DNA of 64,000 bases from positions 1 to 64,000 of IMG/VR virus record IMGVR_UViG_3300042473_001540; one strand, 5' to 3'. Each line of letters opens with the position of its first letter. Position 1 is the stretch's first letter. Under the pieces are notes generated by a model that had not been told where the DNA came from, made no database searches, and worked only from the letters and a program-made list of their open reading frames with translations. The translations under genes were made by a program, and so were the position numbers. This document shows positions 1-54,847 of this stretch, piece by piece.

Positions 1-49
1 TTTTGAAATATTTTTCCAACAAAGCCATTACTTCTTTTTTGTCTACCAT
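1..49 (-). CDS. 5' end of LRR-like cassette protein (runs off window)
   Basis: ATG overlaps the W-stop of 43..687 (AGATGGTAG); reads MVDKKEVMALLEKYFK, nearly identical to the start of 32317..32922. Confidence 0.8.
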   Translation of the reverse strand, partial: MVDKKEVMALLEKYFK

Positions 50-687
50 CTGGCATTTCCTTCAAAGCCTGCATCTTCCAAGTCTTTTTGGCAGTCAAAC
101 ATTGCTCGTTTGCCTTGCCCTGCGTATTTGTTCAAAATATCATGGCATTGAATTACTTTGTCCCAACTTACCTTGGCTTGGCCTGGTGTGAAATCAACAT
201 GAAGTGCTACTAATGTTCGTAGCAGAGGCAAGTCTGGTTCGTAATCCAAACTCATGGTACCAGCAATGTGGTCAGGACAGCCTTCAAGGCTAGTGAGGGG
301 ATTTTTGAACACCATAAATGCACCGCCAACTTTTTTTGGCGCACCAATGAGATTGGTCAGCTTACAACTATAGGCAGTGTAGTCTTCTCCCACCTCAATT
401 GGTCCTCCCTTGAGACTTTCAAGGTTACTGTTGCGTGCCACAGAAAACACCCCAGTAACGCTTGTGGGCGCCCCTTCAAGACTTTTCAATCCCATACTGC
501 TGACATTGAACATGCCTTTGACCTCGCCAAACCTTACATTGAATCCTGATGATCCCATAAGGAATTGTATATCTCCAGTGAGATTCAGCTTGTTTTCATC
601 GTCAAAGCGTATTTGCCTAATACGCGAGGAATCATAATAGAGTTTGAATGTGTTCCAAATCTCTTTTTGTTCAGTGGTTAAGGCCAT
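43..687 (-). CDS. LRR-like repeat protein, cassette family
   Basis: LxSLEGxPxxVxGxF repeats; C-terminus GKRAMFDCQKDLEDAGFEGNARW shared with the 32-38 kb array. Confidence 0.85.
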   Translation of the reverse strand: MALTTEQKEIWNTFKLYYDSSRIRQIRFDDENKLNLTGDIQFLMGSSGFNVRFGEVKGMFNVSSMGLKSLEGAPTSVTGVFSVARNSNLESLKGGPIEVGEDYTAYSCKLTNLIGAPKKVGGAFMVFKNPLTSLEGCPDHIAGTMSLDYEPDLPLLRTLVALHVDFTPGQAKVSWDKVIQCHDILNKYAGQGKRAMFDCQKDLEDAGFEGNARW

Positions 688-2262: not shown

Positions 2263-3390
2263 ATGATGCAAACTAATGAAGCCCAAGATTGGGAACAGAT
2301 AAAAGATCCAGCAAAAAGATGGCTTGGAAGATTCACATATATGAATCAAGGAAAGAATCCCGAAAAGCACGTATTAGATACTCTCATCAAGAAATATCCC
2401 AACAAAGCTGGAGTCATATATCGAGGAATGAATTTCACTCGGGAAGAATCCTATACAGAGTTCATGGAACTGTTCAACAAGTCAAATGGCAAGTTAACGT
2501 TCAATGTGGTCACAAGCTGGAGTGGTGATCCCAGCACTGCTAACCAATTTGCATTGACTCAACCCACTTATCAATTGAATCCTGCTGTGTTAGCCGCTCA
2601 TGACCAACAAATGAAACGTCGAGAAAGGCTTAGTGGTTACAGAGGAGTAATTTTGAAAACCACTGTCTCTGCTGGAGTGGGCATTGATGTTGACGCCACT
2701 GGGGTTGGACATGAGAGTGAAATTGTGTTACCTCCTGGCACTTATCAAACAGAGATTTACCAAGAAGTAAAACAATACAAACACAGTCTTGAGGATGGCG
2801 ACACCTCAGTTGATGATGTGATTTTGAAAACAACAGCAGAGAGCTTACGCAGCCGATCTACAGAGCACAGCTTCTTTGACTATGTGATACATCATCATGG
2901 CCAGGAATTGAGTCCAAAAGCACAGCAGCATTTGTTGAAATTGTTTGGTCCTCAAACTGGTATACCTTTGTTCAAGAGTTCTGTTGATCAGCATACAAAT
3001 TACTTTACCAAAAAACCTGAGGTGACGTTTGACTATCACATACCAAACATACGGCTGTTTGAGTTGGCAGAAAAAGGAATTTTCACTCCTGAAGTAACAA
3101 ATAAGATCAGATTGTTGGGTAAAAAAATCATTAGTCAAGCACTGCCTGTAATAGAGAGTGTTATAGTTGATGCCACTTATTTCAACCCAGCACAGTTGGG
3201 TCTGGTGAGTAGGATTAGTCAGGACAACCGAGTGATTGATGCTATAAGAAAAGCCATTAAGCCAGCAGTAGCCCAATTGAATCAAAAAGTTCAGGACATC
3301 AACAAAATACAAGATCCAAAAGAGAAAAGGCAGGCCATTGAGCATTACAAGGATGAGATGGTGCGCCTGTTAAGCAGATTGGGCATATAG
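2263..3390 (+). CDS. Putative ADP-ribosyltransferase (R-S-E type) domain protein
   Basis: IYRG...TSWS...HESEIVL motifs; TAAATA upstream. Confidence 0.55.
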   Translation: MMQTNEAQDWEQIKDPAKRWLGRFTYMNQGKNPEKHVLDTLIKKYPNKAGVIYRGMNFTREESYTEFMELFNKSNGKLTFNVVTSWSGDPSTANQFALTQPTYQLNPAVLAAHDQQMKRRERLSGYRGVILKTTVSAGVGIDVDATGVGHESEIVLPPGTYQTEIYQEVKQYKHSLEDGDTSVDDVILKTTAESLRSRSTEHSFFDYVIHHHGQELSPKAQQHLLKLFGPQTGIPLFKSSVDQHTNYFTKKPEVTFDYHIPNIRLFELAEKGIFTPEVTNKIRLLGKKIISQALPVIESVIVDATYFNPAQLGLVSRISQDNRVIDAIRKAIKPAVAQLNQKVQDINKIQDPKEKRQAIEHYKDEMVRLLSRLGI

Positions 3391-3729: not shown

Positions 3730-3780
3730 CATAATCCCCATGTCTTGCTATATAAGAGAATAGCCAAAAGGATAGACCTT
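3726..3780 (+). promoter_or_regulatory. Sigma70 promoter plus leader hairpin motif
   Basis: TTGACA-17-TATATA, then AAAAGGATAGACCTT at 3766-3780. Confidence 0.7.
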
Positions 3781-3808
3781 GCGGCAGATTGAGCAAAGGA
3801 TTTTTGCG

Positions 3809-4879
3809 ATGAACAAAGCTGACCTAGGAATCTTTATCGGAAGGTTTTCTCCTTACCATTCAGGTCACCACCATGTGGTAACTGAAGCACTCAAGCACGC
3901 AGACAATTTGGTGATTTTGGTGGGCAGTGCCCGCAGTCCGCGCAGTTATCGTGTGCCGTTTACCTTTCAAGAACGGCGGGACATGATTGAAGGCAGCCTG
4001 CCTGCCGAGCTGAAAAACAGAGTGCGAGTTCTGCCTCTAGAGGACGCCACCTACAACGACAGCAAGTGGATCCACAATGTGCAGACGCTGGCTGCCCAAG
4101 GGGCGACGCTTTTTGGGCTTGACCCAGCCAAAGCCAAGATCACACTAGTGGGCCACAGCCGAGACAACACCAGCTATTACCTGAAACTGTTTCCTCAATG
4201 GAGCAATGTGGAGGTCAGCAGCTTCCGCGACATCAGCGGTACCAACATTCGCAACAGCTACTTCAGCAACATGGGCCACATGTGGGTGAGAGATGCAGAT
4301 GGCCACCAAGCAGGTGACCTGCCTCAGGATGCAGTGGTGACACCCTATGTGCAGAAGTTTCTCAGCAGTTTCCTTGATACTCCCAACCACAAGCTGATCC
4401 GTGACGAGTATGAGTTTGTGCTGAAGTACAAAAGCAGTTGGGCGGCTGCGCCTTACCCTGTGAATCTAGTGTGCGTAGACGCTGTGGTGATCAAAAGCGG
4501 ACATGTGCTAATGGTGGAACGTGGAGCAATGCCAGGGAAAGGCCAGCTTGCACTTCCTGGTGGATACCTAGATGTAACTGAGCGAGTAGTTGACGGGATG
4601 ATCCGTGAGCTGCGTGAGGAAACTCGGTTGAAAGTCCCAGCTCCGGTGCTTAAAGGCAGCATTGTCAAGAAGGAAGTTTTTGACGATCCTAATCGCAGCA
4701 GCCGAGGTCGAGTGCTCACAGTAGCTTATCTCATTGATCTTGGCACAGGTCCACTTGACACAGTCAAGGGCGGAGATGATGCGGCCTCAGCCAAATGGGT
4801 AGCCCTTAAAGATCTTCGGCCAGAAATCTGTTTTGAGGACCACTATCATTTAATCTCTGTACTAGTCGGGGCAATTTAG
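3809..4879 (+). CDS. nadM: Bifunctional NMN adenylyltransferase / ADP-ribose Nudix hydrolase
   Basis: FIGRFSPYHSGH (HxGH), SGTNIR, Nudix box GG...RELREET. Confidence 0.9.
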   Translation: MNKADLGIFIGRFSPYHSGHHHVVTEALKHADNLVILVGSARSPRSYRVPFTFQERRDMIEGSLPAELKNRVRVLPLEDATYNDSKWIHNVQTLAAQGATLFGLDPAKAKITLVGHSRDNTSYYLKLFPQWSNVEVSSFRDISGTNIRNSYFSNMGHMWVRDADGHQAGDLPQDAVVTPYVQKFLSSFLDTPNHKLIRDEYEFVLKYKSSWAAAPYPVNLVCVDAVVIKSGHVLMVERGAMPGKGQLALPGGYLDVTERVVDGMIRELREETRLKVPAPVLKGSIVKKEVFDDPNRSSRGRVLTVAYLIDLGTGPLDTVKGGDDAASAKWVALKDLRPEICFEDHYHLISVLVGAI

Positions 4880-7020: not shown

Positions 7021-7080
7021 TTGACGTAATTGGGCATCTAGCCTATAAATATGACACAGGAAAAGGATAGACCTTTTCCT
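7021..7080 (+). promoter_or_regulatory. Sigma70/late promoter plus leader hairpin motif
   Basis: TTGACG-17-TATAAATA, then AGGAAAAGG-ATAGA-CCTTTTCCT. Confidence 0.7.
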
Positions 7081-7107
7081 TCACATACTGAACAAGGGAG
7101 ACTTGTT

Positions 7108-8517
7108 ATGTTCAATTACGATAGCGTCATTCTTGACGTCGACAGCTACAAATTCAGCCATCCGTGGCAACTTCCCCCAAACACCACACACATTCACAGC
7201 TACGTAGAAAGTCGCGGCGGACGCTTCCCTCGCACACTGTTTTACGGGCTCCAAATGTGGCTCAAGCGTCGGCTGGTGACTCCAGTGACCATGAGCGACG
7301 TGGACGAGGCTGCTGGATTGGCAGCCGCACACATGGTGCCTTTCCATCGGGAAGGCTGGGAATACATTGTGCGTGAGCACCAGGGCCGGTTGCCAGTAGA
7401 GATTCGAGCAGTGCCCGAAGGCATGGTGATCCCCACTCACAACGTGCTAGCCACTGTGGTGAACACCGATCCCAATGTGCCCTGGCTCACTAGCTTCCTA
7501 GAGACAGCTCTACTCCGTGCTGTTTGGTACCCCACCACAGTGGCCACACTCAGCTGGCATGCCAAGCAGACCATTCGAGCTGCACTGGGGAAGAGCAGCG
7601 ACAACCCCGAAGGCGAGCTTCTGTTTCGACTGCACGACTTTGGCGCTCGTGGCGTCAGCAGCGATGAAAGCGCTCAGCTGGGTGGCAGTGCTCACCTAGT
7701 GAACTTCCGAGGCACCGACACTGTTGCAGCCCTCCTTGCAGCCCGACGCTACTACACCGAGGCCATGGCAGGGTTTAGCATTCCGGCAGCAGAGCACAGC
7801 ACCATCACCAGTTGGGGTCGCGATGGCGAAGCTGAGGCCTATGGCAACATGCTCAAGCAGTTTGCCCGGCCAGGCAGCATCCTTGCAGTGGTGAGCGACA
7901 GCTACGACATCATGAACGCGGTCAACCACATCTGGGGCGAAACACTGCGAGACCGTGTGCTAGACAGTGGGGCCACCCTTGTGATTCGTCCCGACAGCGG
8001 TGATCCAGTTGTGGTGCCAGTTGATGTGGTTGAGGCACTTGGTGAGCGGTTTGGCTACACCGTCAACAGCAAGGGCTACAAGGTGCTGAACAAGAGTGTG
8101 CGTGTGATCCAGGGCGATGGCATGAACATTGACAGCATCAAAACCCTGTATGACAACCTCACAGCACGCGGCTGGAGTGCAGAAAACGTGGCTGTGGGCA
8201 TGGGCGGCCAACTCTTGCAAGGTATTACTCGCGACACCAATCGATTTGCGATGAAAGCTTCAGCTGCCTGTATTGATGGGGAATGGCGCGAGGTATATAA
8301 GGATCCTATTACAGACAAAGGAAAAACATCCAAGAAAGGTAAAGTTACCCTTTGGCAGTCAGGTAACCAATTTCAAACAAGCGTTAACACTCCTCTACGC
8401 GGTCTTGAGAATGGTGTGGTGTGGACCGACGTTCTGCAGACAGTCTACCGGAATGGACGCCTTCTCATTGATCAATCATTCCAGGACATTAGAGATCGAT
8501 CTGAGAAAGTCTTTTAA
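7108..8517 (+). CDS. nadV: Nicotinamide phosphoribosyltransferase (NAMPT)
   Basis: DSYKFSH, LHDFGARG, SIPAAEHS, VSDSYD, IRPDSGDP, IQGDG motifs. Confidence 0.95.
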   Translation: MFNYDSVILDVDSYKFSHPWQLPPNTTHIHSYVESRGGRFPRTLFYGLQMWLKRRLVTPVTMSDVDEAAGLAAAHMVPFHREGWEYIVREHQGRLPVEIRAVPEGMVIPTHNVLATVVNTDPNVPWLTSFLETALLRAVWYPTTVATLSWHAKQTIRAALGKSSDNPEGELLFRLHDFGARGVSSDESAQLGGSAHLVNFRGTDTVAALLAARRYYTEAMAGFSIPAAEHSTITSWGRDGEAEAYGNMLKQFARPGSILAVVSDSYDIMNAVNHIWGETLRDRVLDSGATLVIRPDSGDPVVVPVDVVEALGERFGYTVNSKGYKVLNKSVRVIQGDGMNIDSIKTLYDNLTARGWSAENVAVGMGGQLLQGITRDTNRFAMKASAACIDGEWREVYKDPITDKGKTSKKGKVTLWQSGNQFQTSVNTPLRGLENGVVWTDVLQTVYRNGRLLIDQSFQDIRDRSEKVF

Positions 8518-10008: not shown

Positions 10009-10536
10009 ATGAGCGATTTAAAAACACTTACTTGGGCAAATCACAAGCTTGCCGAAAGTACTCCTTTGATGGCTGCTATGCTTTCTGGAGATATAACACC
10101 TGAATGCTACTCTGATCTAGTGTACAGCAAACACTTGTTGTATTCTGTTATTGAAAGCAGACTTGCTTTTGAGTGTGCTGACTTGCCTCGAGCAGGCTGT
10201 GCGTTCCAGGACTGGAAAGAGATGGGGTCCCACAGTCCCACTTTACCTGCCAGTTTTTTTGAATTTCACGAGAGACTGGAAACTGTGTCTGAAAGCCAAT
10301 TGTGGGCGCATGTGTATGTGCACTACCTTGCCCCGCTCTATGGTGGTCAAATCTTGAAGAAGATTTTGAGCCCTCGTTTTCCGGTAAACATGCTGAGTTT
10401 TGAAACACCCAAAGCAGCTATTGCTGAGATTCGCTACAAAACACATGCTGGTTTGGCTGAAGAGGCCAATCTCAGCTTTGAGATGACAACAAGGTACTAT
10501 GACGAACTTCATCAATCTCATCAACCAAACGGCTGA
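10009..10536 (+). CDS. Heme oxygenase
   Basis: LKTLTWANHKLAE (heme-ligand His), AHVYVHYLAPLYGGQIL. Confidence 0.85.
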   Translation: MSDLKTLTWANHKLAESTPLMAAMLSGDITPECYSDLVYSKHLLYSVIESRLAFECADLPRAGCAFQDWKEMGSHSPTLPASFFEFHERLETVSESQLWAHVYVHYLAPLYGGQILKKILSPRFPVNMLSFETPKAAIAEIRYKTHAGLAEEANLSFEMTTRYYDELHQSHQPNG

Positions 10537-11125
10537 TAAATTTGAGCAGCTGATCCAAAACAACACCACTCTCTTGACGGAGATACCAACAGAGGATTTT
10601 GGTTGGACCAATAACCGATGGTATAGCCAACAGTTTCGGCTTGCTCATGTGGAAAGATTTCAGCAACCAAAATTCAGTGTGTTGCACACTGTGATCTTTC
10701 CTCACCTGACTGATCCCAGCCCTATTTTTGGGTTTGATATCATTGCCAGTGACACCAAGGCCACAGGTTTGTTTTTTGATTTCAGTCCCACTGTTGAAAG
10801 TTATGGAATCATATCTAGTCATCTATGGAGTGAGCCACGTGAAAGACCTGAATGGGGAACAATTTTCAGCGAGCATTGGATCGCTTGCAGACCCACATAT
10901 ACGGAAGCTGAAACCATCAGCACATTGGCATGCACACTGTTGGAACAATATCTATCTCAGTTGGGAACAAAAACCACAACAGATGTACCTATGGTCATAA
11001 AGAAGCAAAATCAATACAGTTTGAACCAAAGACAAAACACTCATACTACTAGAGTTCTCATGAAGATACTGGGAGAAGAGCGTGGCCAGTATTTTGTGGA
11101 AAATATTTTATTCCCAACCATATGA
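10499..11125 (+). CDS. Ferredoxin-dependent bilin reductase (PcyA/PcyX-like)
   Basis: VLHTVIFP, PIFGFDII, FDFSP, RERPEWGTIFS, QRQNTHT; overlaps heme oxygenase. Confidence 0.85.
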   Translation: MTNFINLINQTADKFEQLIQNNTTLLTEIPTEDFGWTNNRWYSQQFRLAHVERFQQPKFSVLHTVIFPHLTDPSPIFGFDIIASDTKATGLFFDFSPTVESYGIISSHLWSEPRERPEWGTIFSEHWIACRPTYTEAETISTLACTLLEQYLSQLGTKTTTDVPMVIKKQNQYSLNQRQNTHTTRVLMKILGEERGQYFVENILFPTI

Positions 11126-11181: not shown

Positions 11182-12591
11182 ATGACACCCGCTACAACGA
11201 CAGCCAAAACTATTGAAAAATCCAGTGATATGGATGCAACCAAACTGTATCTCAAGCAGGTTGCCAAAAACAAGTTGCTTACACATCAGCAGGAAATTCA
11301 ATTTAGTCAACAAATTGAAAACAGCAAGAAAAACCTGCTCTTGAATCTGTTCTCTATTCCTATGGCAGTATGGCAGTTTGATACCAAGATTCAAGGTGTA
11401 GTAAAAGGGGAAATTGACAGCCACAGCATTTTTGACATTGAAGAAACAGAACTAGCCCCTCTGCTCACAAATCTAGCAAACATTCAACAGGATATTATGC
11501 TGTTAAGCACCAGCCCCAATAGTGAACTCTGTCAACGAGTGGCTGAAACCTGTTCTTCGCTGAGTTTCAAACTCAGCTTTTACGACAGCATGGTTCAGCC
11601 CTTCAACGACATGGTGAAAGACATTATTAGCGCACAAGGAGCTTACCTGCGCTTTGCACAAAGCAAAGGAGTCTCTCGTGAGTTGTTCCTAGCCGCATAC
11701 CAAAGCATGTCACAAGACAAAAATTGGCTGCGGTTCAAAACAGTTCACCAAGCCGAAGTGGAAAAGCATGAGTCGCAACTAGCAAGTTTTGTTGCCAACA
11801 CGGGTATGCCACTTGACACACTCCTTGAAAAATGCCGCCAGATTCGGCAAGAGCAAAAAAACAAGGACGAGGCAGTGGAGATTATGCTCAAGAGCAATCT
11901 TCGACTCGTGGTGAGTGTGGCAAAGAAATACACCAACATCAGTCAAACTCCCATTCTTGATCTCATTCAAGAAGGCAACATTGGTCTCTTGAAAGCTATT
12001 GAGAAGTTTGATTGGAAGATGGGATTTCGTTTCAGCACCTACGCCACTTGGTGGATCAAGCAGTGTGTGCTGAAAGCCTTGAATGAGCATCATCGTATCA
12101 TTCGTATCCCAGCTCACATGAGCGACCTTGCCAAGAAGGTAACGCGAGCACGAGCTGAGTTTGTAAATCACAATGGTTTTGAGCCCAGTGTGCAAGAAAT
12201 TGCAGAGATGCTGGAAATTGATGTGGAAAACGTAGACAAAGTCTACAGTGTTGCGCAGGGCACAATCTCTCTGGAAACGCCAATTGGCGGTGAAGAAGAT
12301 CAAACCATTGCACATCTTATTGAAGACACTGAAGGGGTGAATGCGTTTAACCTCTTGGCTGAGGCTGACAGCGCATATGCAGTGTCAGAGGTCTTGAAAC
12401 ATCTCAGTCCCAAGGAAGAGCGTGTGATCAGGATGCGCTTTGGTATTGGTGTAAACGAACAAAGCACACTGGAAGACATTGGCAACAAATTTGGTGTCAC
12501 TCGTGAGCGTGTGCGCCAGATTGAAAGCAAAGCACTGGAAAAGCTCAAGAGTACGGAACTAGCTCAGAAGCTGCAAGAAGCTTTTACCTAA
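11182..12591 (+). CDS. rpoD: RNA polymerase sigma70 factor (RpoD-like)
   Basis: NLRLVVSVAKKY, DLIQEGNIGLLKAIEKFD, FSTYATWWI, TRERVRQIE. Confidence 0.9.
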   Translation: MTPATTTAKTIEKSSDMDATKLYLKQVAKNKLLTHQQEIQFSQQIENSKKNLLLNLFSIPMAVWQFDTKIQGVVKGEIDSHSIFDIEETELAPLLTNLANIQQDIMLLSTSPNSELCQRVAETCSSLSFKLSFYDSMVQPFNDMVKDIISAQGAYLRFAQSKGVSRELFLAAYQSMSQDKNWLRFKTVHQAEVEKHESQLASFVANTGMPLDTLLEKCRQIRQEQKNKDEAVEIMLKSNLRLVVSVAKKYTNISQTPILDLIQEGNIGLLKAIEKFDWKMGFRFSTYATWWIKQCVLKALNEHHRIIRIPAHMSDLAKKVTRARAEFVNHNGFEPSVQEIAEMLEIDVENVDKVYSVAQGTISLETPIGGEEDQTIAHLIEDTEGVNAFNLLAEADSAYAVSEVLKHLSPKEERVIRMRFGIGVNEQSTLEDIGNKFGVTRERVRQIESKALEKLKSTELAQKLQEAFT

Positions 12592-14472: not shown

Positions 14473-18564
<4,092 letters not shown>

Positions 18565-25024: not shown

Positions 25025-25133
25025 TTGCCATCGAGGTTGGAACAGCCTCCCAACACACCATGAGAATGGTAACTAGCCGGCAGCAATCACCTAGCTGGTG
25101 AAGAAATCCGGAAGTGGCATCCGGCGATGGCGA
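25025..25133 (+). ncRNA. Candidate multibranch RNA
   Basis: TTGCCATCG/CGATGGCGA closing stem with four internal hairpins. Confidence 0.45.
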
Positions 25134-25152: not shown

Positions 25153-25205
25153 GGGCCTGTAGCTCAACTGAATAGAGCGTGAGACTTTGGATCTCAAGGT
25201 TGAGA
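25153..25205 (+). pseudogene. Truncated tRNA (Arg-like body, TTG anticodon)
   Basis: Intact 5' acceptor strand, D and anticodon arms; no T arm or matching 3' acceptor strand. Confidence 0.55.
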
Positions 25206-27988: not shown

Positions 27989-28063
27989 CTGGGTGTAGCT
28001 CAGAAGCAGAGCGCTGGTTTTGGGAACCAGAGGCCAGGATTGCGAAATTCCTCACCCGGACCA
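27989..28063 (+). tRNA. tRNA-Pro(TGG)
   Basis: CTGGT-TTTGGGA-ACCAG; T loop TGCGAAA; CCA. Confidence 0.85.
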
Positions 28064-29007: not shown

Positions 29008-29059
29008 CCTGCATGGATCATTTGCAGCTAGCAAGATGCTGCTATATACTATGTACTGT

Positions 29060-29222
29060 GCCGGATTAGCTCATTTGGTAGAGCAATTGATTTTTCCGTG
29101 GCGGGATAATGCCACCAACTGGTGAATAAATTTACCAGTTGTTTGTGGGCAACACTGGCCTAAAGCCAGTACGCCAAATGGTAATCAATAGGTGGTCAGT
29201 TCGAAACTGACATCCGGCACCA
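29060..29222 (+). tRNA. tRNA-Thr (TGT or GGT) with 87-nt anticodon-loop insertion
   Basis: Perfect 5' and 3' tRNA halves (ATTGA/TCAAT stem, TTCGAAA, ACCA) separated by a structured insert. Confidence 0.8.
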
Positions 29223-29241
29223 TAATTGAAAGGCAGCAACA

Positions 29242-29823
29242 ATGCAACAGCTTCAAACCTACAGCAATCTCATTTGGAGTTTTGATGGGGCTATGAGCGA
29301 CAGTCTTTGCAGTCTGTTACAGGACCACATGAGCCTTTTAAAATTCAGTAATCAACCCAGTATTGATGGTCGCATGCCTTGGGAAGACCAAGACGACTTG
29401 CCTTATAACCAAATACAAGACATCACAGTCAAACGTGCTATAGAGGCGTATCGCTTCACCTGTAGTCAGTTGGTATATCAAGTCACAAGGCAATTTGCCT
29501 ACCCCAACTACACTGACTTAGTGCTGTGGCGGCCTGGACGACAAATGCATGAACACAAAGACAATGGTTACACTGACGACAGCAATCTCCGTCCTCGAGT
29601 TTGGTCATCTGTTACCTATCTCAACGACGACTATCAAGGCGGAGTGACGTTTATAAAAAATGAACGTGGTGAATACTATAGCTCAGCACCTCGTAAGGGG
29701 CGGATAGTGATTTTTGCCAGTGATGACCGTTGCACGCATGGTGTCACACCTGTTGAGGGTGGGAACAGATTTACGTTAAGTATTTGGTTCGCAACTGATC
29801 CCTACGCTCTTGAGCGCACTTGA
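29242..29823 (+). CDS. 2OG-Fe(II) oxygenase (prolyl hydroxylase-like)
   Basis: HKD...TYLNDDYQGG...HGV...RFTLSIW. Confidence 0.85.
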   Translation: MQQLQTYSNLIWSFDGAMSDSLCSLLQDHMSLLKFSNQPSIDGRMPWEDQDDLPYNQIQDITVKRAIEAYRFTCSQLVYQVTRQFAYPNYTDLVLWRPGRQMHEHKDNGYTDDSNLRPRVWSSVTYLNDDYQGGVTFIKNERGEYYSSAPRKGRIVIFASDDRCTHGVTPVEGGNRFTLSIWFATDPYALERT

Positions 29824-32316: not shown

Positions 32317-32922
32317 TTACCATCTTGCATTATCCTCAAATCCAGCATCTTCTAGTTCTTTTTGACAATCAAACATGGCACGTTTGCCTTGTCCTGCGTA
32401 TTTGTTCAAGATTGTTTCAACAGTCGTGTGATTCATTGCTGACCGCAACGAGATACTTTTGGCTGCCAAACAACGGAGCAGTGGAAGAGTAGGCGTGTAA
32501 GGTATAGCCAAGTAATTGAGCTCTGAAGGCATACCTTGGAGTGAGGTTAATGGGTTGAGGTGACAACTAAAAAGATCACCAACACTGCTGGGAGCACCTT
32601 CCAGTGAAGTCAGTTGGTTGTTGAAGCATACGAAACTTCCAACCACATTCTTGGGTGCAGCTTTAAGTGAAATAAGTTGGTTACTTGAGCCTAAGAAACT
32701 TCCACCAACACTCTCTGGCGCCCCGTCCAGTGTGGTTAGTTGGTTGTAATCGCACTGGAAGTGTCCAAGAACACTCTTGAAACGCACAGGGAACTGGGGT
32801 AATTGTCTTTTAAGTATAACATTACCCTGGCAAGTGATCAACCCCTCAGGATCTATTGTGACTTGGCCTGTTGTTTTGAAATTAGCTTTCAACAAAGCCA
32901 TTACTTCTTTTTTGTCTACCAT
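32317..32922 (-). CDS. LRR-like cassette protein 9
   Basis: LRR-like repeats plus conserved C-terminal block. Confidence 0.85.
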   Translation of the reverse strand: MVDKKEVMALLKANFKTTGQVTIDPEGLITCQGNVILKRQLPQFPVRFKSVLGHFQCDYNQLTTLDGAPESVGGSFLGSSNQLISLKAAPKNVVGSFVCFNNQLTSLEGAPSSVGDLFSCHLNPLTSLQGMPSELNYLAIPYTPTLPLLRCLAAKSISLRSAMNHTTVETILNKYAGQGKRAMFDCQKELEDAGFEDNARW

Positions 32923-33668
32923 CTTGCATTCCCTTCAAATCCAGCATCTTCCAGTTCTTTTTGGCAGTCAAACATGGCACGTTTGCCTTGACCCATATAC
33001 TTTTGCAGAATAGCCCGCACCTCGTGTGGCCATCCCATACCCGACCACAGTTTTTTAGCATTTAAACAACGCAAGAGCGGCAGAGTGGGGCTGTAGTCAA
33101 TCCATAAAACCCTTACTTCAGTAGGCATTCCTTCAAGTGACTCTAGCTGATTACCCCATGCTCTCAACTCGCCAGTGATGGTTTTTGGTGCACCGTGTAG
33201 TGAGACTAGTTTGTTTTCCATGCAAAACAAATCATGCACTTTCTCAGGAACATGTTCCAGTGATGAGAGTTGATTTGTCATACAAGAGAAATTGGCACCA
33301 ACTGATTTGGGACAGTGTTCAAGGCTTTCTATGTTGTTATTATCGCATTTGAAATCTCCGCCCACATGTTGAGGCGAACCCAACAAACTGGTGAGTTGGT
33401 TGTGGCCACACTTGAAATCTCTACCTACCCAAGAGGGTGCGCCTTCTAGACTCACCAGATCGGTATGCTGTACAGCAAAATCGTAGCGTATTTTTCCAAA
33501 CCTTACCCGCAAGGTTTTTATACCTGGCTTACCATCAAGGTAAGATTTCTCCTTGCTCTTGACACTGCCTGTGCAGGATATCAATCCTGTGTTGGGATCA
33601 ACAGAGAGTTTACCTGTGTGAGAGTAATATTTGTCAAAAGTTTTTTTGATCCCGGCTAGATCTACCAT
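32916..33668 (-). CDS. LRR-like cassette protein 8
   Basis: Same; 7-nt ATGGTAG start/stop overlap. Confidence 0.85.
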   Translation of the reverse strand: MVDLAGIKKTFDKYYSHTGKLSVDPNTGLISCTGSVKSKEKSYLDGKPGIKTLRVRFGKIRYDFAVQHTDLVSLEGAPSWVGRDFKCGHNQLTSLLGSPQHVGGDFKCDNNNIESLEHCPKSVGANFSCMTNQLSSLEHVPEKVHDLFCMENKLVSLHGAPKTITGELRAWGNQLESLEGMPTEVRVLWIDYSPTLPLLRCLNAKKLWSGMGWPHEVRAILQKYMGQGKRAMFDCQKELEDAGFEGNARW

Positions 33669-34279
33669 CGTGCATTTCCTTCAAATCCAGAGTCTTCCAA
33701 ATCTTTTTGGCAGTCAAACATGGCAGCTTTGCCTTGACCTGCATATTTGTTCATGATTTCTTGAACCTTCTGGGGTGGCTCCGATTCATCAACCCTATGC
33801 ATGAATACAATTTTTTTGGCAACCAATGCACGTAGCAAAGGCAAAGTGGGCGAATATTGTAACACTAGTCGCCCTAAACCTTCTTGCGGTATGCCTTCAA
33901 GACTTTCAAGTGGATTGCCCACACAACTCAAAGATCCAAGAACTTTTTTGGGTGCACCTTGCAAGCTCTTGAGCTGGTTGAACCCACATAAGTAGTGTTC
34001 GCCAACAGCATCAGGACCGCCTTCAAGAGTTTGTAAATTGTTCTCAGTACAACGAAATTCATTGTAGACATATTTGGGAGATCCTTGAAGGCTTGTGAGC
34101 CCCATGCCCCCCACATCAAATCCTTCCACTTCATAAAAGCCAACTGGCAACTTCTTAACATGCAACATAAGCGTTACGTAACCTTTTGTGCTTATTGTTC
34201 CATCAGAATTGATTACAATGCTTTCATTACATTGAAAATAATCATCAAAAGTTTTTTTGATGTTATCAACGTCTACCAT
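33662..34279 (-). CDS. LRR-like cassette protein 7
   Basis: Same. Confidence 0.85.
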   Translation of the reverse strand: MVDVDNIKKTFDDYFQCNESIVINSDGTISTKGYVTLMLHVKKLPVGFYEVEGFDVGGMGLTSLQGSPKYVYNEFRCTENNLQTLEGGPDAVGEHYLCGFNQLKSLQGAPKKVLGSLSCVGNPLESLEGIPQEGLGRLVLQYSPTLPLLRALVAKKIVFMHRVDESEPPQKVQEIMNKYAGQGKAAMFDCQKDLEDSGFEGNARW

Positions 34280-34911
34280 TTTGCATGATCCTCAAATCCA
34301 GCGTCTTCCAAATCTTTTTGGCAATCAAACATGGCACGTTTGCCTTGGCCAGCATATTTGTTCAAAATTGTCTGCACTTTTCCCTTCTCCACAGTGTGAG
34401 TGTCGTCAGCAGGCTCTAAAAATATATGCCTTGCTGCCAAGGTACGTAAGAGAGGCAAATGTGGTAGATACGGTAACCAAGCTGCATTTTCCACTTTCAA
34501 CGGAAATCCATCCAAGCTTTTCAACGGATTACCAATGCAATTGAAATTATTGGGTATCTGGACAGGTGCCCCCTTCAAATCAACAAGTTGATTATGGTCA
34601 CAGTAGTAGTTCCAACCTACAATTTCTGGCCCCCCACTAAGGCTTTTGAGCATGTTACGTGAACAGTCAAAACTCACGCCCACTTCAGGGGGACAGCCTT
34701 CCAAGGTTACTAGTGCGTTCTCATCTAACGATAGATTTTCAGTTACAGCTTTGAAGGCAACTGGCAGTTTTTCAAAACGTGTATAGTGGAGATTCAACAA
34801 TTGAATATCGCCATTTACTGTTACCAGTCCATCTGATGAAACTTTTGCACTGTTGTAGTCAAAGCTGAAATGGTCTTTCAATAACTGCAAGATTTCTCGT
34901 TTGTTTACCAT
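34273..34911 (-). CDS. LRR-like cassette protein 6
   Basis: Same. Confidence 0.85.
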   Translation of the reverse strand: MVNKREILQLLKDHFSFDYNSAKVSSDGLVTVNGDIQLLNLHYTRFEKLPVAFKAVTENLSLDENALVTLEGCPPEVGVSFDCSRNMLKSLSGGPEIVGWNYYCDHNQLVDLKGAPVQIPNNFNCIGNPLKSLDGFPLKVENAAWLPYLPHLPLLRTLAARHIFLEPADDTHTVEKGKVQTILNKYAGQGKRAMFDCQKDLEDAGFEDHAKW

Positions 34912-35564
34912 CTGGCGTTGTCCTCAAATCCGGCATCTTCCAATTCTTTTTGACAATCAAACATAACACGTTTTCCTTGCCCCAAATATTTTTCCAAAAT
35001 GTATAACACCTTCCAGGCATCGCTGCCCTCGCTTTGATACGGCCAAAAAATAATCTCTGGTGCCACCAATGTGCGCAACAAAGGCAGCTGAGTATCATAA
35101 GTGATATACAAACTATCTCCAATTTTTTGAGGAAAGCCCTGCAAGCTCTCTAGAGGATTGGCTGAACAATTGAACACACTGGGGATTTCTCTAGGTGCCC
35201 CTTCCAAATCCTTCAATTGATTTTTACTGCAATTATAACTGCCGCCAAATGTGGGTGTTTGTGTCGTGCCTATTGTTTTGGGTCCAAACTTCAAACTTTT
35301 GAGTTCATTATTGTCACACTCAAAATTCTTACCAACAGTTTCTGGACAACCCTCTAGTGTCTTGAGTTGGTTGATGCTGAGCATCATACTGCCTTCAATG
35401 TGAGAAAATTTCACCGGTAGTTCTTGAAAAGAACTGTGAAATTTGTTGTATAACACAACGTCTCCCATGACACTGACTTTGCCAGCTGGATCAACAATGG
35501 GGTCCCCATCTACCATGAAATGTTGAGTTAGCGTGTTCAACACATGCTGTTTGACGTCTACCAT
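34905..35564 (-). CDS. LRR-like cassette protein 5
   Basis: Same. Confidence 0.85.
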   Translation of the reverse strand: MVDVKQHVLNTLTQHFMVDGDPIVDPAGKVSVMGDVVLYNKFHSSFQELPVKFSHIEGSMMLSINQLKTLEGCPETVGKNFECDNNELKSLKFGPKTIGTTQTPTFGGSYNCSKNQLKDLEGAPREIPSVFNCSANPLESLQGFPQKIGDSLYITYDTQLPLLRTLVAPEIIFWPYQSEGSDAWKVLYILEKYLGQGKRVMFDCQKELEDAGFEDNARW

Positions 35565-36163
35565 CTTGCATTTCCTTCAAAGCCCGCATCTTCCAGTTCT
35601 TTTTGGCAATCAAACAGGGCACGTTTGCCTTGTCCTGCGTATTTGTAAAATATTCCTTCAATTGTTAGAAGTTTGCTTTGCATAACATTGTGGGCATACA
35701 GCATTAGGCCCTGTTGGCAGTTCAAAGCTCGAAGCAAGGGCAATTTATTGTGATAATTTATGCTCAAGTGTTGGCCTACTCGTTGGGGAAACCCAGCAAG
35801 ACTCAACACTGGAACCTCTTGTCTAAATCCCACACGACCTGAAACCTCAAGGGGCCCACCTGTCATGTCTTTCAAAGGATTTTTGTTGGCAGTGAATCTG
35901 CCTCCCACAATCTGCGGACAACCTTCAAGACTGGAGAGTCCACATCTGTCTAAAATCAAACTGGCATGGCAAACGCCAAATTTTACAGGCAGTTTTCCAT
36001 TGGGAAACGGTCCTTGTATGGCCAAGAGCACACCATATCCTGGTGTGATCTCCTGCACATTTACTATACCACTATCTTCAATTTGAAAGCGCACCCGGTT
36101 GTCTGCCTCACCATTACGAAAATAAGTGTTCAACATGTGCTGAACTTCTTGTTTGTCTACCAT
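35558..36163 (-). CDS. LRR-like cassette protein 4
   Basis: Same. Confidence 0.85.
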   Translation of the reverse strand: MVDKQEVQHMLNTYFRNGEADNRVRFQIEDSGIVNVQEITPGYGVLLAIQGPFPNGKLPVKFGVCHASLILDRCGLSSLEGCPQIVGGRFTANKNPLKDMTGGPLEVSGRVGFRQEVPVLSLAGFPQRVGQHLSINYHNKLPLLRALNCQQGLMLYAHNVMQSKLLTIEGIFYKYAGQGKRALFDCQKELEDAGFEGNARW

Positions 36164-36756
36164 CTTGCATTTCCTTCAAATCCAGCATCCTCTAGATCTT
36201 TTTGACATTCAAACAGGGCACGCTTGCCCTGTCCTTTGTATTTTTCAATTATTTCTTCAATGGGATTAGTGTTAAAGGATGATGAGCTCAATATTACACC
36301 ATCTTGGCAAGCTAACGTGCGCAGCAGCGGCAACTTGTCATGGTAAGGCAGTTTAGCATAGTCACCCACCCTATCAGGAAAACCATCCAAACTCTCTAAT
36401 AGGTTTTTCTGCATCCCAAGCCAAAACCTACCTGTGACTTCTTTGGGCCCACCCTTGAAATTTTTCAATTGATTGCCAAGTGCAACAAAATTGCCTTGGA
36501 TTACAGGGGGACAACCAACCAAGTCCACGATTTGATTCCGGTCCAATTTTAAGCTGGCTTTGAACAAGCCAAATCTCACAGGCAACTGACCTCCAGGGAA
36601 GGGTTTGTCCTTAATAGTGCGGAGATGGCCGCGACCAGGAGTCAGCTCAAGCACATTAACCAAGCCCTCAGGACCTATGTCAAATTTCACAGCGTCATTT
36701 GGCTCAAAGAAAAAATACTCTGCCAACAGTTCCAAAATTTCCCTTTTGTCTACCAT
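36157..36756 (-). CDS. LRR-like cassette protein 3
   Basis: Same. Confidence 0.85.
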   Translation of the reverse strand: MVDKREILELLAEYFFFEPNDAVKFDIGPEGLVNVLELTPGRGHLRTIKDKPFPGGQLPVRFGLFKASLKLDRNQIVDLVGCPPVIQGNFVALGNQLKNFKGGPKEVTGRFWLGMQKNLLESLDGFPDRVGDYAKLPYHDKLPLLRTLACQDGVILSSSSFNTNPIEEIIEKYKGQGKRALFECQKDLEDAGFEGNARW

Positions 36757-37571
36757 TTGGCGTTCCTTTCAAATCCTGCGTCTTCCAATTCTTTTTGACA
36801 GTCAAACAGGGCTCGTTTGCCCTGGCCTGCGTATTTTTTCAAGATGGTTTCCACTTGAATATACTTGCCCCACAGCACAGGCCAAAAATTGACCTTCTGG
36901 GCTACCAAAAGCCGTAACAAGGGCAAATCGGATTTGTAACTGACTTCAATCAAATCAGGAGTTTGGGAGCCTAACCCCTCAAGATTTTCCAAGGGATTGT
37001 GATCAAAAATAAACTGCTTGGAAATATTCAAAGAGGCACCTTTGAGTGTTGTGAGCTTGTTGTTGGTTGCCCAAAAATATTCCACGGTCTGTGGTGCGTC
37101 TTGAAGATCAGTCAAGAGATTTTTACTGACATCAAACATACCACCTATTTGCAGGGGAGCACCTCGCAAACTCACTAAATTGTTGTTGTATGCAATGTAT
37201 TCTTGTGTAAAGTCTCGTGGACTTCCCAACAAATCTGAGAGTTTATTATTCTGGCAAGAATATTGTCCTTTTACTGTTTTTGGGCCACCAACCAAGCTGA
37301 TCAACTGGTTTTCACTGCAATCAAATGTGTCCAAGACAGTGTGAGGACAGCCTTCAAGTGTTTCCAACTTGTTCCTGTGACAGAGAAAATTGCCTTCCAC
37401 CACTCCAAATCTCACAGGCAATCGAGAGGTCTCTTTGCTCAACAAAATTGATCCATGAGCATCTACAACACCTGTATCATGTATAGTGAAAAGGGTACTT
37501 TCCCAACCAAAGTATTCATTCAGTAACTGACGAACAGTTGTTTTGTCTTGTGGGAATTCCTGGTTTACCAT
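36750..37571 (-). CDS. LRR-like cassette protein 2
   Basis: Same; longest member. Confidence 0.85.
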   Translation of the reverse strand: MVNQEFPQDKTTVRQLLNEYFGWESTLFTIHDTGVVDAHGSILLSKETSRLPVRFGVVEGNFLCHRNKLETLEGCPHTVLDTFDCSENQLISLVGGPKTVKGQYSCQNNKLSDLLGSPRDFTQEYIAYNNNLVSLRGAPLQIGGMFDVSKNLLTDLQDAPQTVEYFWATNNKLTTLKGASLNISKQFIFDHNPLENLEGLGSQTPDLIEVSYKSDLPLLRLLVAQKVNFWPVLWGKYIQVETILKKYAGQGKRALFDCQKELEDAGFERNAKW

Positions 37572-38221
37572 CGTGCATTTTCCTCAAAACCCGCATCTTC
37601 CAATTCTTTTTGGCAGTCAAACAAAGCACGTTTGCCTTTGCCTGCATAACTGTTCAAAATTTTATGTAACTGCTGGAATTTTCCTTCGTTTCCTCGCTTA
37701 TATTGCATAGGCACAATAAGGTCCACATGCAAGGCTCCTAATGTTCTCAACAGTGGTATTGTGGGACTATACGTCAATGTTACCCAAGCAATGCTCTTGG
37801 GCAAGTGGTCAAGTGACTCCAGTGGGTTGTCTTGAATCTCCAGATTGTCAGATACTGTGTCCGGCAAACCTTGTAGAGAAGTCAACTTGTTGCTATTGAG
37901 AAGGATACTGCCACTGACCCAATGCGGAAAACTGGTTAACTTTGATAGCAAGTTGAAGCTGGCGTCGAAATCTCCTTCAATCTCAAATGGGCATCCTTCC
38001 AAGGTTCTTAGATTCTTGTTGTTGCAGGTGAAGGTACCATGCACCTTACTGAAACGCAAAGGTAACTGAGATTGAGGCCGCGTTAGGTGTAAGTCACCAG
38101 CCACAACAATCTTACCATCTTGATCAAACATCCAACCAGCTGGATATAAGGCATTGCTCTCTATCTTGAAGTTCTGGCTCAAGATGGTTTTGGTTTGTTC
38201 ATATTCCACATCACTTACCAT
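37565..38221 (-). CDS. LRR-like cassette protein 1
   Basis: Same. Confidence 0.85.
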   Translation of the reverse strand: MVSDVEYEQTKTILSQNFKIESNALYPAGWMFDQDGKIVVAGDLHLTRPQSQLPLRFSKVHGTFTCNNKNLRTLEGCPFEIEGDFDASFNLLSKLTSFPHWVSGSILLNSNKLTSLQGLPDTVSDNLEIQDNPLESLDHLPKSIAWVTLTYSPTIPLLRTLGALHVDLIVPMQYKRGNEGKFQQLHKILNSYAGKGKRALFDCQKELEDAGFEENARW

Positions 38222-39908: not shown

Positions 39909-39994
39909 GCGGCGTTAGCTCAGGGGTTAGAGCACAAGTCTTCCAAACTTGAGGCGAATAGGTTCCATCGGTTCGAATCCGATACGCCGCTCCA
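39909..39994 (+). tRNA. tRNA-Gly(TCC), enlarged variable region
   Basis: CAAGT-CTTCCAA-ACTTG; U73; CCA. Confidence 0.85.
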
Positions 39995-40124: not shown

Positions 40125-40248
40125 GGATCCGTGGTCTAATTGGATAAGGCAAGAGCCTTCCGGTCCCGCAGGTAGCATTCAAGGTTCGAATCCTTGGGGA
40201 CCGCTCCTAAGCTCTTCGATGGGGGTTCGAATCCCTCCGGGTCCGCCA
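40125..40248 (+). tRNA. tRNA-Arg (probably TCT) with 47-nt tRNA-mimic insertion in anticodon
   Basis: GGATCCG/CGGGTCC-GCCA; AGAGC/GCTCT stem; two TTCGAAT T arms. Confidence 0.8.
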
Positions 40249-40280
40249 CTTACTACACTCTTATAAAAGAACCCAACCTA

Positions 40281-41072
40281 ATGCAACCACTCACCCCCGA
40301 TCAAACCCAACGCATAAAAGAATTATGGCATCAAGCCGAAGGAATTGTGATCTTGGCTGGTGCCGGCATGAGTGTAGACAGTGGCTTGCCAGATTTTCGA
40401 GGCGCCACAGGCTTGTGGACCGAGGCCAAAGAAAACTTTCTCAAGAAAGCTACAGCCAAAAGTTTTGACACCAATCCCCTTGAGGCTTGGAACTTTTACG
40501 TTGGCCGCATGATTAAATATCAAGACACTGTCCCACATGAGGGTTACAAGATCCTCCTGGATCTCCTACAATCACACAACAAAAAAAGTTTTGTAGTAAC
40601 CAGTAATGTTGATGGCCATTTTTTGAAAGCTGGTTATGACCCACAATATCTCTATGAGATACATGGCAATCTGCGAAAAATTCAGTGCACTCAACCCTGT
40701 TGCCGAAACTTACCCTCTATGCCAAAATTTTCTTCCCTGCTCACCTCAGAACAGGAAATCCCCAAATGCCCCTACTGCAACAAGAATGCTCGACCAAATG
40801 TGCTGATGTTCAACGACCCAGGGATTGTTTGGACACAAATTGATCAAGGTCAAGAAAATTTTCGGAATTGGGCAGCATCAAAGATGGAGGTTTTGGGTAT
40901 TGAAATTGGTGCAGGAACTGGAATCCCCAGCATTAGGATCTTTGGTCAAGAACGCACCACTAACTTGATTCGCATCAATCCACATGAGTTTGAAACTTCA
41001 CGTACAAGTGATTTAGGAATCTCTGCCGGTGGGTTAGAAGGGATACGGGCCCTAGAGAGGGCTGTGGGCTAG
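40281..41072 (+). CDS. Sir2-family NAD-dependent deacylase
   Basis: GAGMSVDSGLPDFRG, TSNVDG, EIHG, CxxC pairs, RPNVLMF. Confidence 0.9.
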   Translation: MQPLTPDQTQRIKELWHQAEGIVILAGAGMSVDSGLPDFRGATGLWTEAKENFLKKATAKSFDTNPLEAWNFYVGRMIKYQDTVPHEGYKILLDLLQSHNKKSFVVTSNVDGHFLKAGYDPQYLYEIHGNLRKIQCTQPCCRNLPSMPKFSSLLTSEQEIPKCPYCNKNARPNVLMFNDPGIVWTQIDQGQENFRNWAASKMEVLGIEIGAGTGIPSIRIFGQERTTNLIRINPHEFETSRTSDLGISAGGLEGIRALERAVG

Positions 41073-47192: not shown

Positions 47193-47266
47193 GGCCCCAT
47201 AAGACAAAGGTAGTCAGCTGGACTCTAAATCCAGTGGTGTGAGTTCAAATCTCACTGGTGCCACCA
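47193..47266 (+). tRNA. Amber suppressor tRNA (CTA)
   Basis: CTGGA-CTCTAAA-TCCAG; TTCAAAT; ACCA; own TTGACG-17-TATACA promoter. Confidence 0.85.
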
Positions 47267-51356: not shown

Positions 51357-53024
<1,668 letters not shown>

Positions 53025-54355: not shown

Positions 54356-54847
54356 ATGACCAAGATAGTGTTTTTAGACTTTGACGGCGTGTTATTACCT
54401 GATCCTGATGCTAGAGAGCAAGCAGAGCAGGGACTGACTACCAATAACTATCTCTCTAAAGTTGTATTCAATCCCAGTTGTGTGAAAAATTTGAATGCCT
54501 TGCTCAAGGCAACTCATGCTGAAATAGTTCTCAGCACAAGTTGGGCTGAGGGACACAGTGTTAGTGAAGTCAGCAATTGTCTCATGCGCAATGGTATTGA
54601 TCCTTCCTGTATATTTGAATACGATGATCCCAGTGAAGGCAATTACATGACTCCTAGACAGCAAGGGTCAAATCGGGGTCAAGAAGTTTTGAACTGGATT
54701 GCTGATCATCCTGAGATTGACACTTGGGTAGCAATAGATGACAACCCAGCCATCTTGTATTTGAAAACCAATTATGTGAGAACACATCCTGATCATGGTT
54801 TTGACAAAGCCAGCTTAGCAAAAGCCTTGAGCATTTTGAACAAATAA
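54356..54847 (+). CDS. HAD phosphatase (RNA-repair-associated type)
   Basis: FLDFDGVL, VLSTSW, RGQEV..W, VAIDD. Confidence 0.75.
   Translation: MTKIVFLDFDGVLLPDPDAREQAEQGLTTNNYLSKVVFNPSCVKNLNALLKATHAEIVLSTSWAEGHSVSEVSNCLMRNGIDPSCIFEYDDPSEGNYMTPRQQGSNRGQEVLNWIADHPEIDTWVAIDDNPAILYLKTNYVRTHPDHGFDKASLAKALSILNK

Follow-up and report, generated by a model that had tools for sequence, protein, structure and literature searches.

How can a tRNA-Thr gene of a huge phage yield a tRNA when its anticodon loop is interrupted by 87 nt of folded sequence, and what kind of element is the insert? The question arises from a 64,000-nt stretch of DNA (hereafter the window), which is the minus strand of bases 116698-180697 of a 180.7-kb IMG/VR virus record estimated to be 44% complete. 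A near-identical 310-kb contig (G001) starts with the same 64 kb, as indicated by 100% identity over the 501 bases compared and by a hit of our covariance model at the same coordinates; about 20 lake-water metagenome runs from 2020-2024 contain the stretch, and this is therefore a freshwater huge phage. It has about 45% GC and carries NAD-salvage genes, a sigma-70 factor and collagen-repeat proteins, and all of its tRNA genes lie inside the window. A search of INPHARED phages revealed no close relative. The features discussed below are collected in Table 1.

Table 1. Coordinates of the interrupted tRNA genes and associated features; positions without a prefix refer to the window, and prefixed positions to the loci of related or identical phages numbered in this study.
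Feature	Position	Strand	Description
Promoter	29021-29050	+	Sigma-70-like site (TTTGCA-18-TATACT) 10 nt upstream of the tRNA; a consensus match only; an equivalent TTGACA-N17-TATAGT stands upstream of the L140 and L150 alleles
tRNA-Thr exon 1	29060-29093	+	Acceptor 5' strand, D arm, anticodon stem 5' strand, U32 U33 U34
tRNA-Thr intron (family A)	29094-29180	+	87 nt, between nt 34 and 35 of the tRNA
Hairpin H1	29098-29115	+	Insert nt 5-22; 6 bp, loop GGAUAA, starting 4 nt after the 5' splice site
Hairpin H2	29116-29141	+	Insert nt 23-48; 11 bp; distal part varies in sequence, base CAAC/GUUG conserved
Spacer	29142-29147	+	Conserved single-stranded UUUGUG (family consensus UUGUG followed by GGG)
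Hairpin H3	29148-29175	+	Insert nt 55-82; outer 3 bp GGC/GCC, variable internal loop, inner 6-bp stem, invariant loop CUAAA; population SNP 29172 C>A falls in the internal loop
3' tail	29176-29180	+	Conserved AAAUG (family: CC-AAAU-N, then the splice site); AAA can pair with U32-U34 of exon 1 (inferred from the sequence)
tRNA-Thr exon 2	29181-29222	+	G35 U36, anticodon stem 3' strand, T arm, acceptor 3' strand, encoded CCA
2OG-Fe(II) oxygenase gene	29242-29823		Neighbouring gene used to find relatives
tRNA-Pro(UGG)	27989-28063	+	Uninterrupted; replaced in sister strains L151-L156 by a tRNA-Pro with an 83-nt family A intron
tRNA-Pro intron (family A)	L151:182-264		83 nt, between nt 36 and 37, in a 160-nt tRNA-Pro gene (L151:145-304)
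tRNA-Arg(UCU) exon 1	40125-40160	+	Second interrupted tRNA of the window
tRNA-Arg intron (family B)	40161-40207	+	47 nt, tRNA-like, between nt 35 and 36; 7-bp acceptor-like stem, 12 nt, T arm with loop UUCGAAU, 4-nt tail
tRNA-Arg(UCU) exon 2	40208-40248	+	With CCA
Uninterrupted tRNA-Arg(TCT)	L194:10211-10287		Same place in a relative
Insert in a CUA-anticodon tRNA	L140:11327-11474		Similar to the tRNA-Arg insert; of the Lak megaphage kind
HAD_SAK_2 phosphatase	54356-54847	+	RNA-repair type; candidate end-healing enzyme
Rnl1-type RNA ligase	L013:12458-13675		In G001; with the T4_Rnl1_C domain
Second RNA ligase	L013:4521-5732		In G001; PF09414 and the PHA02142 OB fold
Kinase-phosphoesterase	L186:1474-2706		In G001; 410 aa, AAA_33 kinase fused to a calcineurin-like phosphoesterase (Metallophos)

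The first-pass annotation, made from the sequence alone, described a tRNA-Thr with two flawless halves split by an 87-nt insert of three hairpins, and this observation is confirmed. ARAGORN run with intron search calls the interrupted tRNA-Thr, and both excisions proposed in that annotation give perfect 76-nt cloverleaves with encoded CCA, tRNA-Thr(TGT) when 29094-29180 is deleted and tRNA-Thr(GGT) when 29093-29179 is deleted. The insert alone folds into the three hairpins at -35.9 kcal/mol (z = -4.06, with 0 of 200 shuffles as good), and the whole precursor keeps the cloverleaf (z = -5.5). The locus is identical in three other IMG/VR contigs, and among 509 tRNAs in 1.1 Mb of other viral loci ARAGORN found no other credible interrupted tRNA; chance and assembly artefact are therefore excluded. 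The default ARAGORN scan and the Rfam tRNA model at its gathering score both missed the gene. It is the only tRNA-Thr in the 180-kb record. Standard bacterial tRNA finders miss such genes, so the tRNA sets of huge phages, and inferences about their codon use, are incomplete. The statement in the same annotation that known bacterial tRNA introns are self-splicing group I or II introns and much longer is out of date, since small "enigmatic" introns of 79-114 nt were reported in Lak megaphage tRNAs in 2019 (Devoto et al. 2019, PMC6784885).

To decide between the two splice registers, we scanned IMG/VR for uninterrupted tRNA-Thr genes with the same anticodon stem, which occur in at least 120 contigs; of the 118 genes extracted, position 34 is T in 111, C in 5, A in 2 and G in none. 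Relatives found through the neighbouring oxygenase gene (loci L134-L139, L141-L142 and L150) carry an uninterrupted tRNA-Thr(TGT) at the same place, just upstream of that gene, whereas more distant oxygenase neighbours (P0006 and P0008) have lost the shared gene order. TGT has a single solution, which places the insert between U34 and G35. The GGT reading and a UUU (Lys) reading of the splice site were rejected on the gene order in relatives, the absence of G34 among the look-alikes and the G1-C72/C2-G71 Thr-type acceptor stem.

The insert has homologues from which selection on both the fold and the interrupted tRNA can be read. L140, a JGI contig whose oxygenase is 74% identical, has the same interrupted gene with an 87-nt insert that differs at 16 of 88 aligned columns. 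On the three-hairpin structure 98% of cells pair; three pairs changed on both sides (G-C to A-U in H1, and G-C to A-U and A-U to U-A in H2), and one pair went from G-U to G-C. Sliding the 3' partner of every pair by 1-3 columns drops pairing to 18-47%. However, only four distinct Thr sequences and one Pro sequence are known and the covariation statistics are thin, 12 of 500 shuffles reaching the observed values, and two mispairs occur in H3, one each in L140 and L147. The exons of the window and L140 alleles differ at 13 of 73 positions, yet all 21 stem pairs remain standard, with double compensatory changes at 6-67 and 50-64. This is the signature of a tRNA gene still under selection, implying removal of the insert from the RNA. 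None of the 13 differences falls in the 17-nt anticodon arm next to the insert (P = 0.02), which could reflect a requirement for splicing or co-conversion during intron spread. L150 belongs to the L140 lineage and shares its promoter and flank, but has an uninterrupted tRNA-Thr(TGT) with a different anticodon stem. L147 (oxygenase 97% identical) and strain variants add a few more substitutions, and the locus is stable in lake populations from 2020 to 2024.

A second host tRNA shows that the insert, not the tRNA, sets the boundaries. In the sister strains L151-L156 the tRNA-Pro(UGG) of the window is replaced by a different tRNA-Pro gene whose insert has the same plan of 4 nt, a 6-bp H1, H2, GUUGUGGG, H3 with loop CUAAA, then CCAAAU-N. 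A covariance model (R1) built only from the Thr inserts matches it from first to last position (27.0 bits, E = 8e-4 in 184 kb); the window scores 113.8 bits, L147 112.9 and L140 97.9, but as the Thr sequences built the model only the Pro hit is independent. The model finds nothing in 877 kb of other viral tRNA loci and only one copy in each of the four records of the phage (G000-G003). Relative to Thr, four of the six H1 pairs and several H3 pairs changed on both sides and still pair, and the Pro insert folds alone into the same three hairpins (z = -4.5), as does each family member (z about -4). Excision at the family-consistent positions restores the loops UUUGUAA in Thr and UUUGGGA in Pro, the latter identical to that of the window's uninterrupted tRNA-Pro. 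The boundaries thus keep a fixed distance from the helices of the insert and not from the tRNA body; the last base of the insert is G in Thr but U in Pro, and the last exon base is U in Thr but G in Pro. We refer to these 83-87-nt introns, which have no ORF, as family A. Exact or degenerate pattern scans of IMG/VR returned only the same phage plus chance hits (L008 and L009, a different RNA sharing the H3 hairpin, and L157 and L158), two scans of JGI metagenome contigs found nothing, and none of 20 hits in GTDB genomes was confirmed by the covariance model, suggesting that the family is rare or confined to this clade. No paper in the literature searched describes this family or a mechanism for such introns.

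The element was compared with each known system in turn. No Rfam family matches at E <= 10; a cmscan of 29040-29240 at that cut-off, which covers the hammerhead, twister, twister-sister, pistol, hatchet, HDV-like and hairpin ribozymes, lists only chance-level hits (psRNA14 at 20.8 bits and a partial tRNA). The signatures of group II introns (5' GUGYG, 3' AY, domain V) are absent, as the introns start UUCCG or AUGCG and end AUG or AUU, and neither RF00029 nor a related model matches. The Pro H1 (GAGCGU-GAGA-ACGUUC) resembles the base of group II domain V, but this was rejected because the Thr H1 (GUGGCG...) lacks the AGC triad. The Lak megaphage introns are likewise small inserts without ORFs in the anticodon loops of huge-phage tRNA genes, have no Rfam family, are present or absent between related genomes and are highly conserved where present. 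Every Lak intron listed in Table S6 of PMC6784885, however, contains an acceptor-like stem plus a T arm (GGTTCGAATCC-type), whereas the Thr intron has no T loop and no tRNA match, and no sequence similarity was seen; Lak phages are gut phages with 26% GC. A 14-bp alternative helix between the 5' end of the tRNA and the intron appears in the minimum-energy fold of the L140 precursor, but we consider it lineage-specific, since it is interrupted in the window (1 of 4 central pairs), broken in L147 and without counterpart in the Pro precursor.

The first-pass annotation had inferred enzyme- or trans-assisted splicing, with a HAD protein at 54356 that could help heal the ends, or alternatively a latent tRNA protected from anticodon nucleases until processed; this interpretation is partly supported. 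Its core idea, a small intron that is not a group I intron and needs something other than classical self-splicing, is supported. The HAD is PF18143 HAD_SAK_2 (E = 1.9e-27), and the search for RNA ligase and endonuclease genes suggested there revealed in G001 the Rnl1-type ligase with its tRNA-specific C-terminal domain, the second ligase, the kinase-phosphoesterase and a PTH2-like protein. These enzymes could turn either kind of break into a sealed anticodon loop, but such sets are common in huge phages whether or not they have introns (PMC7824862), so their presence is permissive and not specific. Neither EndA (PF01974) nor RtcB (PF01139) was found in G000-G003, which are 34-76% complete, the host being unknown. 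The hint of a group I intron (exon ending in U, insert ending in G) is not supported, as it does not hold in the Pro member. Nor is the protective latent tRNA, for which there is no evidence either way; close relatives carry interrupted and uninterrupted alleles of the same genes (tRNA-Pro in the window versus L151; tRNA-Thr in L140 versus L150), the pattern of a mobile, dispensable element rather than of a fixed adaptive device.

We propose that the insert is a genuine intron of a functional tRNA-Thr(UGU) gene, cut out by an as yet unidentified endonuclease and sealed by the phage's own repair enzymes. In this view the pre-tRNA is transcribed from its own promoter and folds into the normal cloverleaf with the intron standing on the anticodon stem; an endonuclease of phage or host that recognises the intron fold would cut 4 nt before H1 and 5 nt after H3, the tRNA body would hold the halves together, and the AAA_33 kinase-metallophosphoesterase, possibly HAD_SAK_2, and the Rnl1-type ligase would then close the nick in the anticodon loop, the reaction for which T4 Rnl1 is known. 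At the DNA level the intron behaves as a dispensable, probably mobile element. What our data establish is a conserved, structured, dispensable intervening sequence, with boundaries set by itself, in tRNA genes that remain under selection; its removal at the RNA level, and the enzymes that would carry this out, are inferred. We put the probability of this whole statement at roughly 0.45, with about 0.8 on a real intron removed from a functional tRNA and about 0.4 on the protein cut-and-seal route. The latter is preferred because nothing in 85 nt resembles a known catalytic core and the terminal nucleotides vary, yet no candidate endonuclease was identified and the evidence comes from DNA only: a search for RNA runs listed none that contains the phage, and one metatranscriptome (run X26) aligned to the window gave only tRNAs of other organisms, the apparent joints at 29085/29190 being their uninterrupted tRNA-Thr(TGT) genes and not spliced or intron-less alleles of this phage. 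The proposed route resembles T4 anticodon-loop repair, in which a PrrC cut is sealed by Pnkp plus Rnl1 and the joint likewise lies in the anticodon loop next to the wobble base; in T4, however, this is repair of host-inflicted damage to a normal tRNA, whereas here it would be a constitutive maturation step, and the link between enzymes and introns is hypothetical. It also parallels archaeal and eukaryal protein-spliced tRNA introns, which are short, structured, without an ORF, extend the anticodon stem and are excised by nuclease and then ligase; Trl1-type healing and sealing (kinase, phosphoesterase, ATP-dependent ligase) parallels the phage's enzyme set. The splice positions here, however, are 34/35 and 36/37 rather than 37/38.

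The main rival, which we consider unlikely, is a new small ribozyme that either splices itself or cleaves itself at both junctions, with the phage enzymes healing and sealing the ends; pairing between the intron and the exons would define the splice sites. Boundaries that follow the intron, and conserved single-stranded motifs next to both splice sites, fit an autocatalytic RNA equally well, and the conserved unpaired motifs UUGUG, CUAAA and CCAAAU lie next to conserved helices. The end of exon 1 is complementary to the tail in both hosts (AUUU/AAAU and UUUGG/CCAAA, so that (CC)AAA would pair with U32-U34(-G36)), both second exons start with G and intron nt 4, which could pair with it, is C in all members, the anticodon arm flanking the intron is free of exon differences, and a kinase-phosphoesterase plus Rnl1 is exactly what ribozyme products with 2',3'-cyclic phosphate and 5'-OH need. 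On the other hand, 83-87 nt is far below any known self-splicing intron, the terminal nucleotides are not conserved (5' U or A, 3' G or U), the 5' splice site is not in a fixed register with the proposed guide but shifts by 2 nt between Thr and Pro, two precise cuts by one very small ribozyme would be unprecedented, and two host tRNAs allow no covariation test of the exon-guide pairing. The boldest form of this reading, also unlikely, is a new class of catalytic intron of about 85 nt that excises itself from anticodon loops by self-splicing, or by double self-cleavage followed by ligation, chooses its splice sites by pairing its 3' tail with the end of exon 1 and spreads between phage tRNA genes, which would make it by far the smallest autonomous intron known.

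It is less likely still that the intron is not removed, the insert being a small selfish, MITE-like element that has inactivated the tRNA gene, or the locus making another product such as a stable 87-nt RNA or tRNA halves and no tRNA-Thr. Presence/absence polymorphism among close relatives, the dispensability of the intron, the lack of RNA evidence for splicing and TnpB/IS605 genes nearby in L140 and in L148/L149, which mark the region as prone to mobile DNA, are consistent with this view. Exons that have diverged by 18% while keeping every cloverleaf pair through compensatory changes are not expected of a dead gene, however; exact removal restores canonical 7-nt loops in three different tRNAs, three independent interruptions (Thr, Pro and Arg) all lie in the anticodon loop, and the promoter is kept in the only tRNA-Thr of the record. 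The hallmarks of an IS200/IS605-derived miniature element also fail, as the target words differ (ATTT versus TTGG, in flanks ending GATTT in Thr and TTTGG in Pro), the end hairpins H1 and H3 are unrelated in sequence, and no other copy occurs in the phage records.

A degenerate group I intron with its missing core (P3-P9) supplied in trans by another RNA is very improbable and already largely refuted, since, although the site between U34 and N35, the exon-terminal U and the intron-terminal G in tRNA-Thr are those of the cyanobacterial tRNA-Leu(UAA) group I intron, and group I introns of bacterial tRNA anticodon loops likewise define their own boundaries and occur at different loop positions in different tRNAs, the insert is less than half the size of the smallest natural group I intron (that of Azoarcus tRNA-Ile is about 205 nt), RF00028 has no match in the insert at E <= 10 or in the four records of the phage at E <= 1, the terminal G and exon U are not conserved in the family, and the H2 loop that could serve as a guide (GAAU) is not conserved in L140. 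Equally improbable is an archaeal/eukaryal-type intron cut at a bulge-helix-bulge motif by an EndA-like enzyme and joined by RtcB, because, by inspection of sequences and folds, each strand in tRNA-Thr has the bulge before the helix, the mirror image of the true motif, the 34/35 site cannot be placed in a 3-4-3 motif without giving an 8-nt loop and no register gives a 7-nt loop, and the Pro member can be drawn as a near motif (UUUG/CAAA flanked by bulges) only if shifted by one base to 37/38, with a 4-nt bulge and A37 instead of the G37 of the window's own tRNA-Pro.

Bacterial and phage tRNA introns are generally held to be self-splicing group I (rarely group II) ribozymes, and protein-spliced tRNA introns to belong to archaea and eukaryotes; the small Lak introns did not fit and have stayed unexplained. 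The present locus gives the problem a tractable form, with a second, structurally distinct family of tiny phage tRNA introns, comparative evidence that both the intron fold and the interrupted tRNA are under selection, natural intron-plus and intron-minus alleles, two host tRNAs with different insertion positions and a defined set of candidate sealing enzymes in the same genome. Either outcome is significant, one being a bacterial-world enzymatic tRNA splicing pathway built from RNA-repair enzymes and the other a new miniature ribozyme.

The tRNA-Arg of the window is split by an insert of a different kind, which is of the same kind as the Lak megaphage introns, so that this phage clade harbours two unrelated families of tiny tRNA introns, of which the Thr/Pro family is the undescribed one. 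A strain variant in run X18 has nine substitutions in the Arg insert and none in the exons, including the compensatory pair 40165 C>T with 40199 G>A, and only excision at the boundaries in Table 1 gives tRNA-Arg(UCU) in both variants. Excision by RNase P and RNase Z is attractive for this insert, which starts exactly at the first base of its acceptor-like stem, but finds no matching helix in the Thr intron. The 5' half of the tRNA-Arg gene matches T5-like phage tRNA-Arg genes.

The tRNA-Thr gene is not the only interrupted tRNA gene of this phage clade (Table). A second one in the window is a tRNA-Arg(UCU) gene split by a 47-nt insert that resembles a tRNA minihelix; a strain variant shows a compensatory change in it, and a relative carries an uninterrupted tRNA-Arg(TCT) at the same place. 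This insert is of the same kind as the introns of the Lak megaphages. In the sister strain represented by contig L151, the uninterrupted tRNA-Pro gene of the window is replaced by a tRNA-Pro(UGG) gene that is interrupted by an 83-nt member of the same intron family as the tRNA-Thr insert. A remnant of the window-type tRNA-Pro 3' end (TCACCCGGACCA) remains just downstream, which indicates cassette replacement by recombination. In addition, L140, a contig of a related phage, contains a tRNA with a CUA (amber-reading) anticodon that carries an insert of roughly 62 nt, its boundaries being approximate, with a T arm (GCUAG-UUCGAUU-CUAGC) inside it.

Other features were noted among the RNA genes of the window. 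A tRNA with the anticodon CUA, which ARAGORN labels 'Pyl' and which scores 58.5 bits against the Rfam tRNA model, is a potential amber suppressor on the basis of its sequence alone, and no alternative code is claimed for the phage. A skipping-rope RNA (RF02924, 44.5 bits) sits inside the tRNA region and is immediately followed by the 5' two-thirds of a tRNA-Gln(UUG)-like sequence, which has the acceptor 5' strand, the D arm and the anticodon arm but no matching T arm or acceptor 3' strand, and is either a pseudo-tRNA or an oddly interrupted gene. The tRNA-Gly(UCC), at 86 nt, has an unusually long variable region for a glycine tRNA, and the same long form is conserved next to the methyltransferase gene in the relatives L194 and L195.

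With regard to mobile DNA, genes encoding TnpB (IS605 OrfB / Cas12f-like) lie inside the tRNA region of related phages, and in the relatives L148 and L149 a TnpB gene end stands where the tRNA-Thr gene is in the other relatives. Free-standing HNH endonuclease genes lie next to the RNA ligase and kinase-phosphoesterase genes in two loci (L013 and L186) of G001, a near-identical contig of the phage, and these are conceivable helpers of intron mobility at the DNA level.

The protein-coding genes of the window include eight tandem, back-to-back overlapping ORFs of about 200-270 aa that look like a paralogous gene array; no Pfam domains are on record for them, and similar arrays follow the tRNA region in the relatives L134, L140 and L148. 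The NAD-related genes are those for an NMN adenylyltransferase-Nudix fusion, a nicotinamide phosphoribosyltransferase and a SIR2-family protein, the last of which lies directly downstream of the interrupted tRNA-Arg. Three large proteins contain collagen triple-helix repeats, and one region (16-20 kb) has a strongly negative GC skew.

Table. Coordinates of additional RNA and protein-coding features in the window and in related contigs.
Sequence	Coordinates	Strand	Feature
Window	40125-40248		Interrupted tRNA-Arg(UCU); insert 40161-40207
L151 (sister strain)	145-304		Interrupted tRNA-Pro(UGG); replaces window 27989-28063
L140 (related phage)	11327-11474		Interrupted tRNA with CUA anticodon
Window	47193-47266		tRNA with CUA anticodon
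Window	25026-25132 and 25153-25200		Skipping-rope RNA, then partial tRNA-Gln(UUG)-like sequence
Window	39909-39994		tRNA-Gly(UCC)
Window	32317-38221	minus	Array of eight ORFs
L140 (related phage)	748-1947 and 11878-12582		TnpB genes
L148 (related phage)	1-447		TnpB gene
Window	3779-4879, 7051-8517, 40194-41072		NAD-related genes
Window	14473-18555, 51357-53015, 60402-62639		Proteins with collagen triple-helix repeats
L013 (G001)	10303-11085		HNH endonuclease gene
L186 (G001)	2735-3316		HNH endonuclease gene
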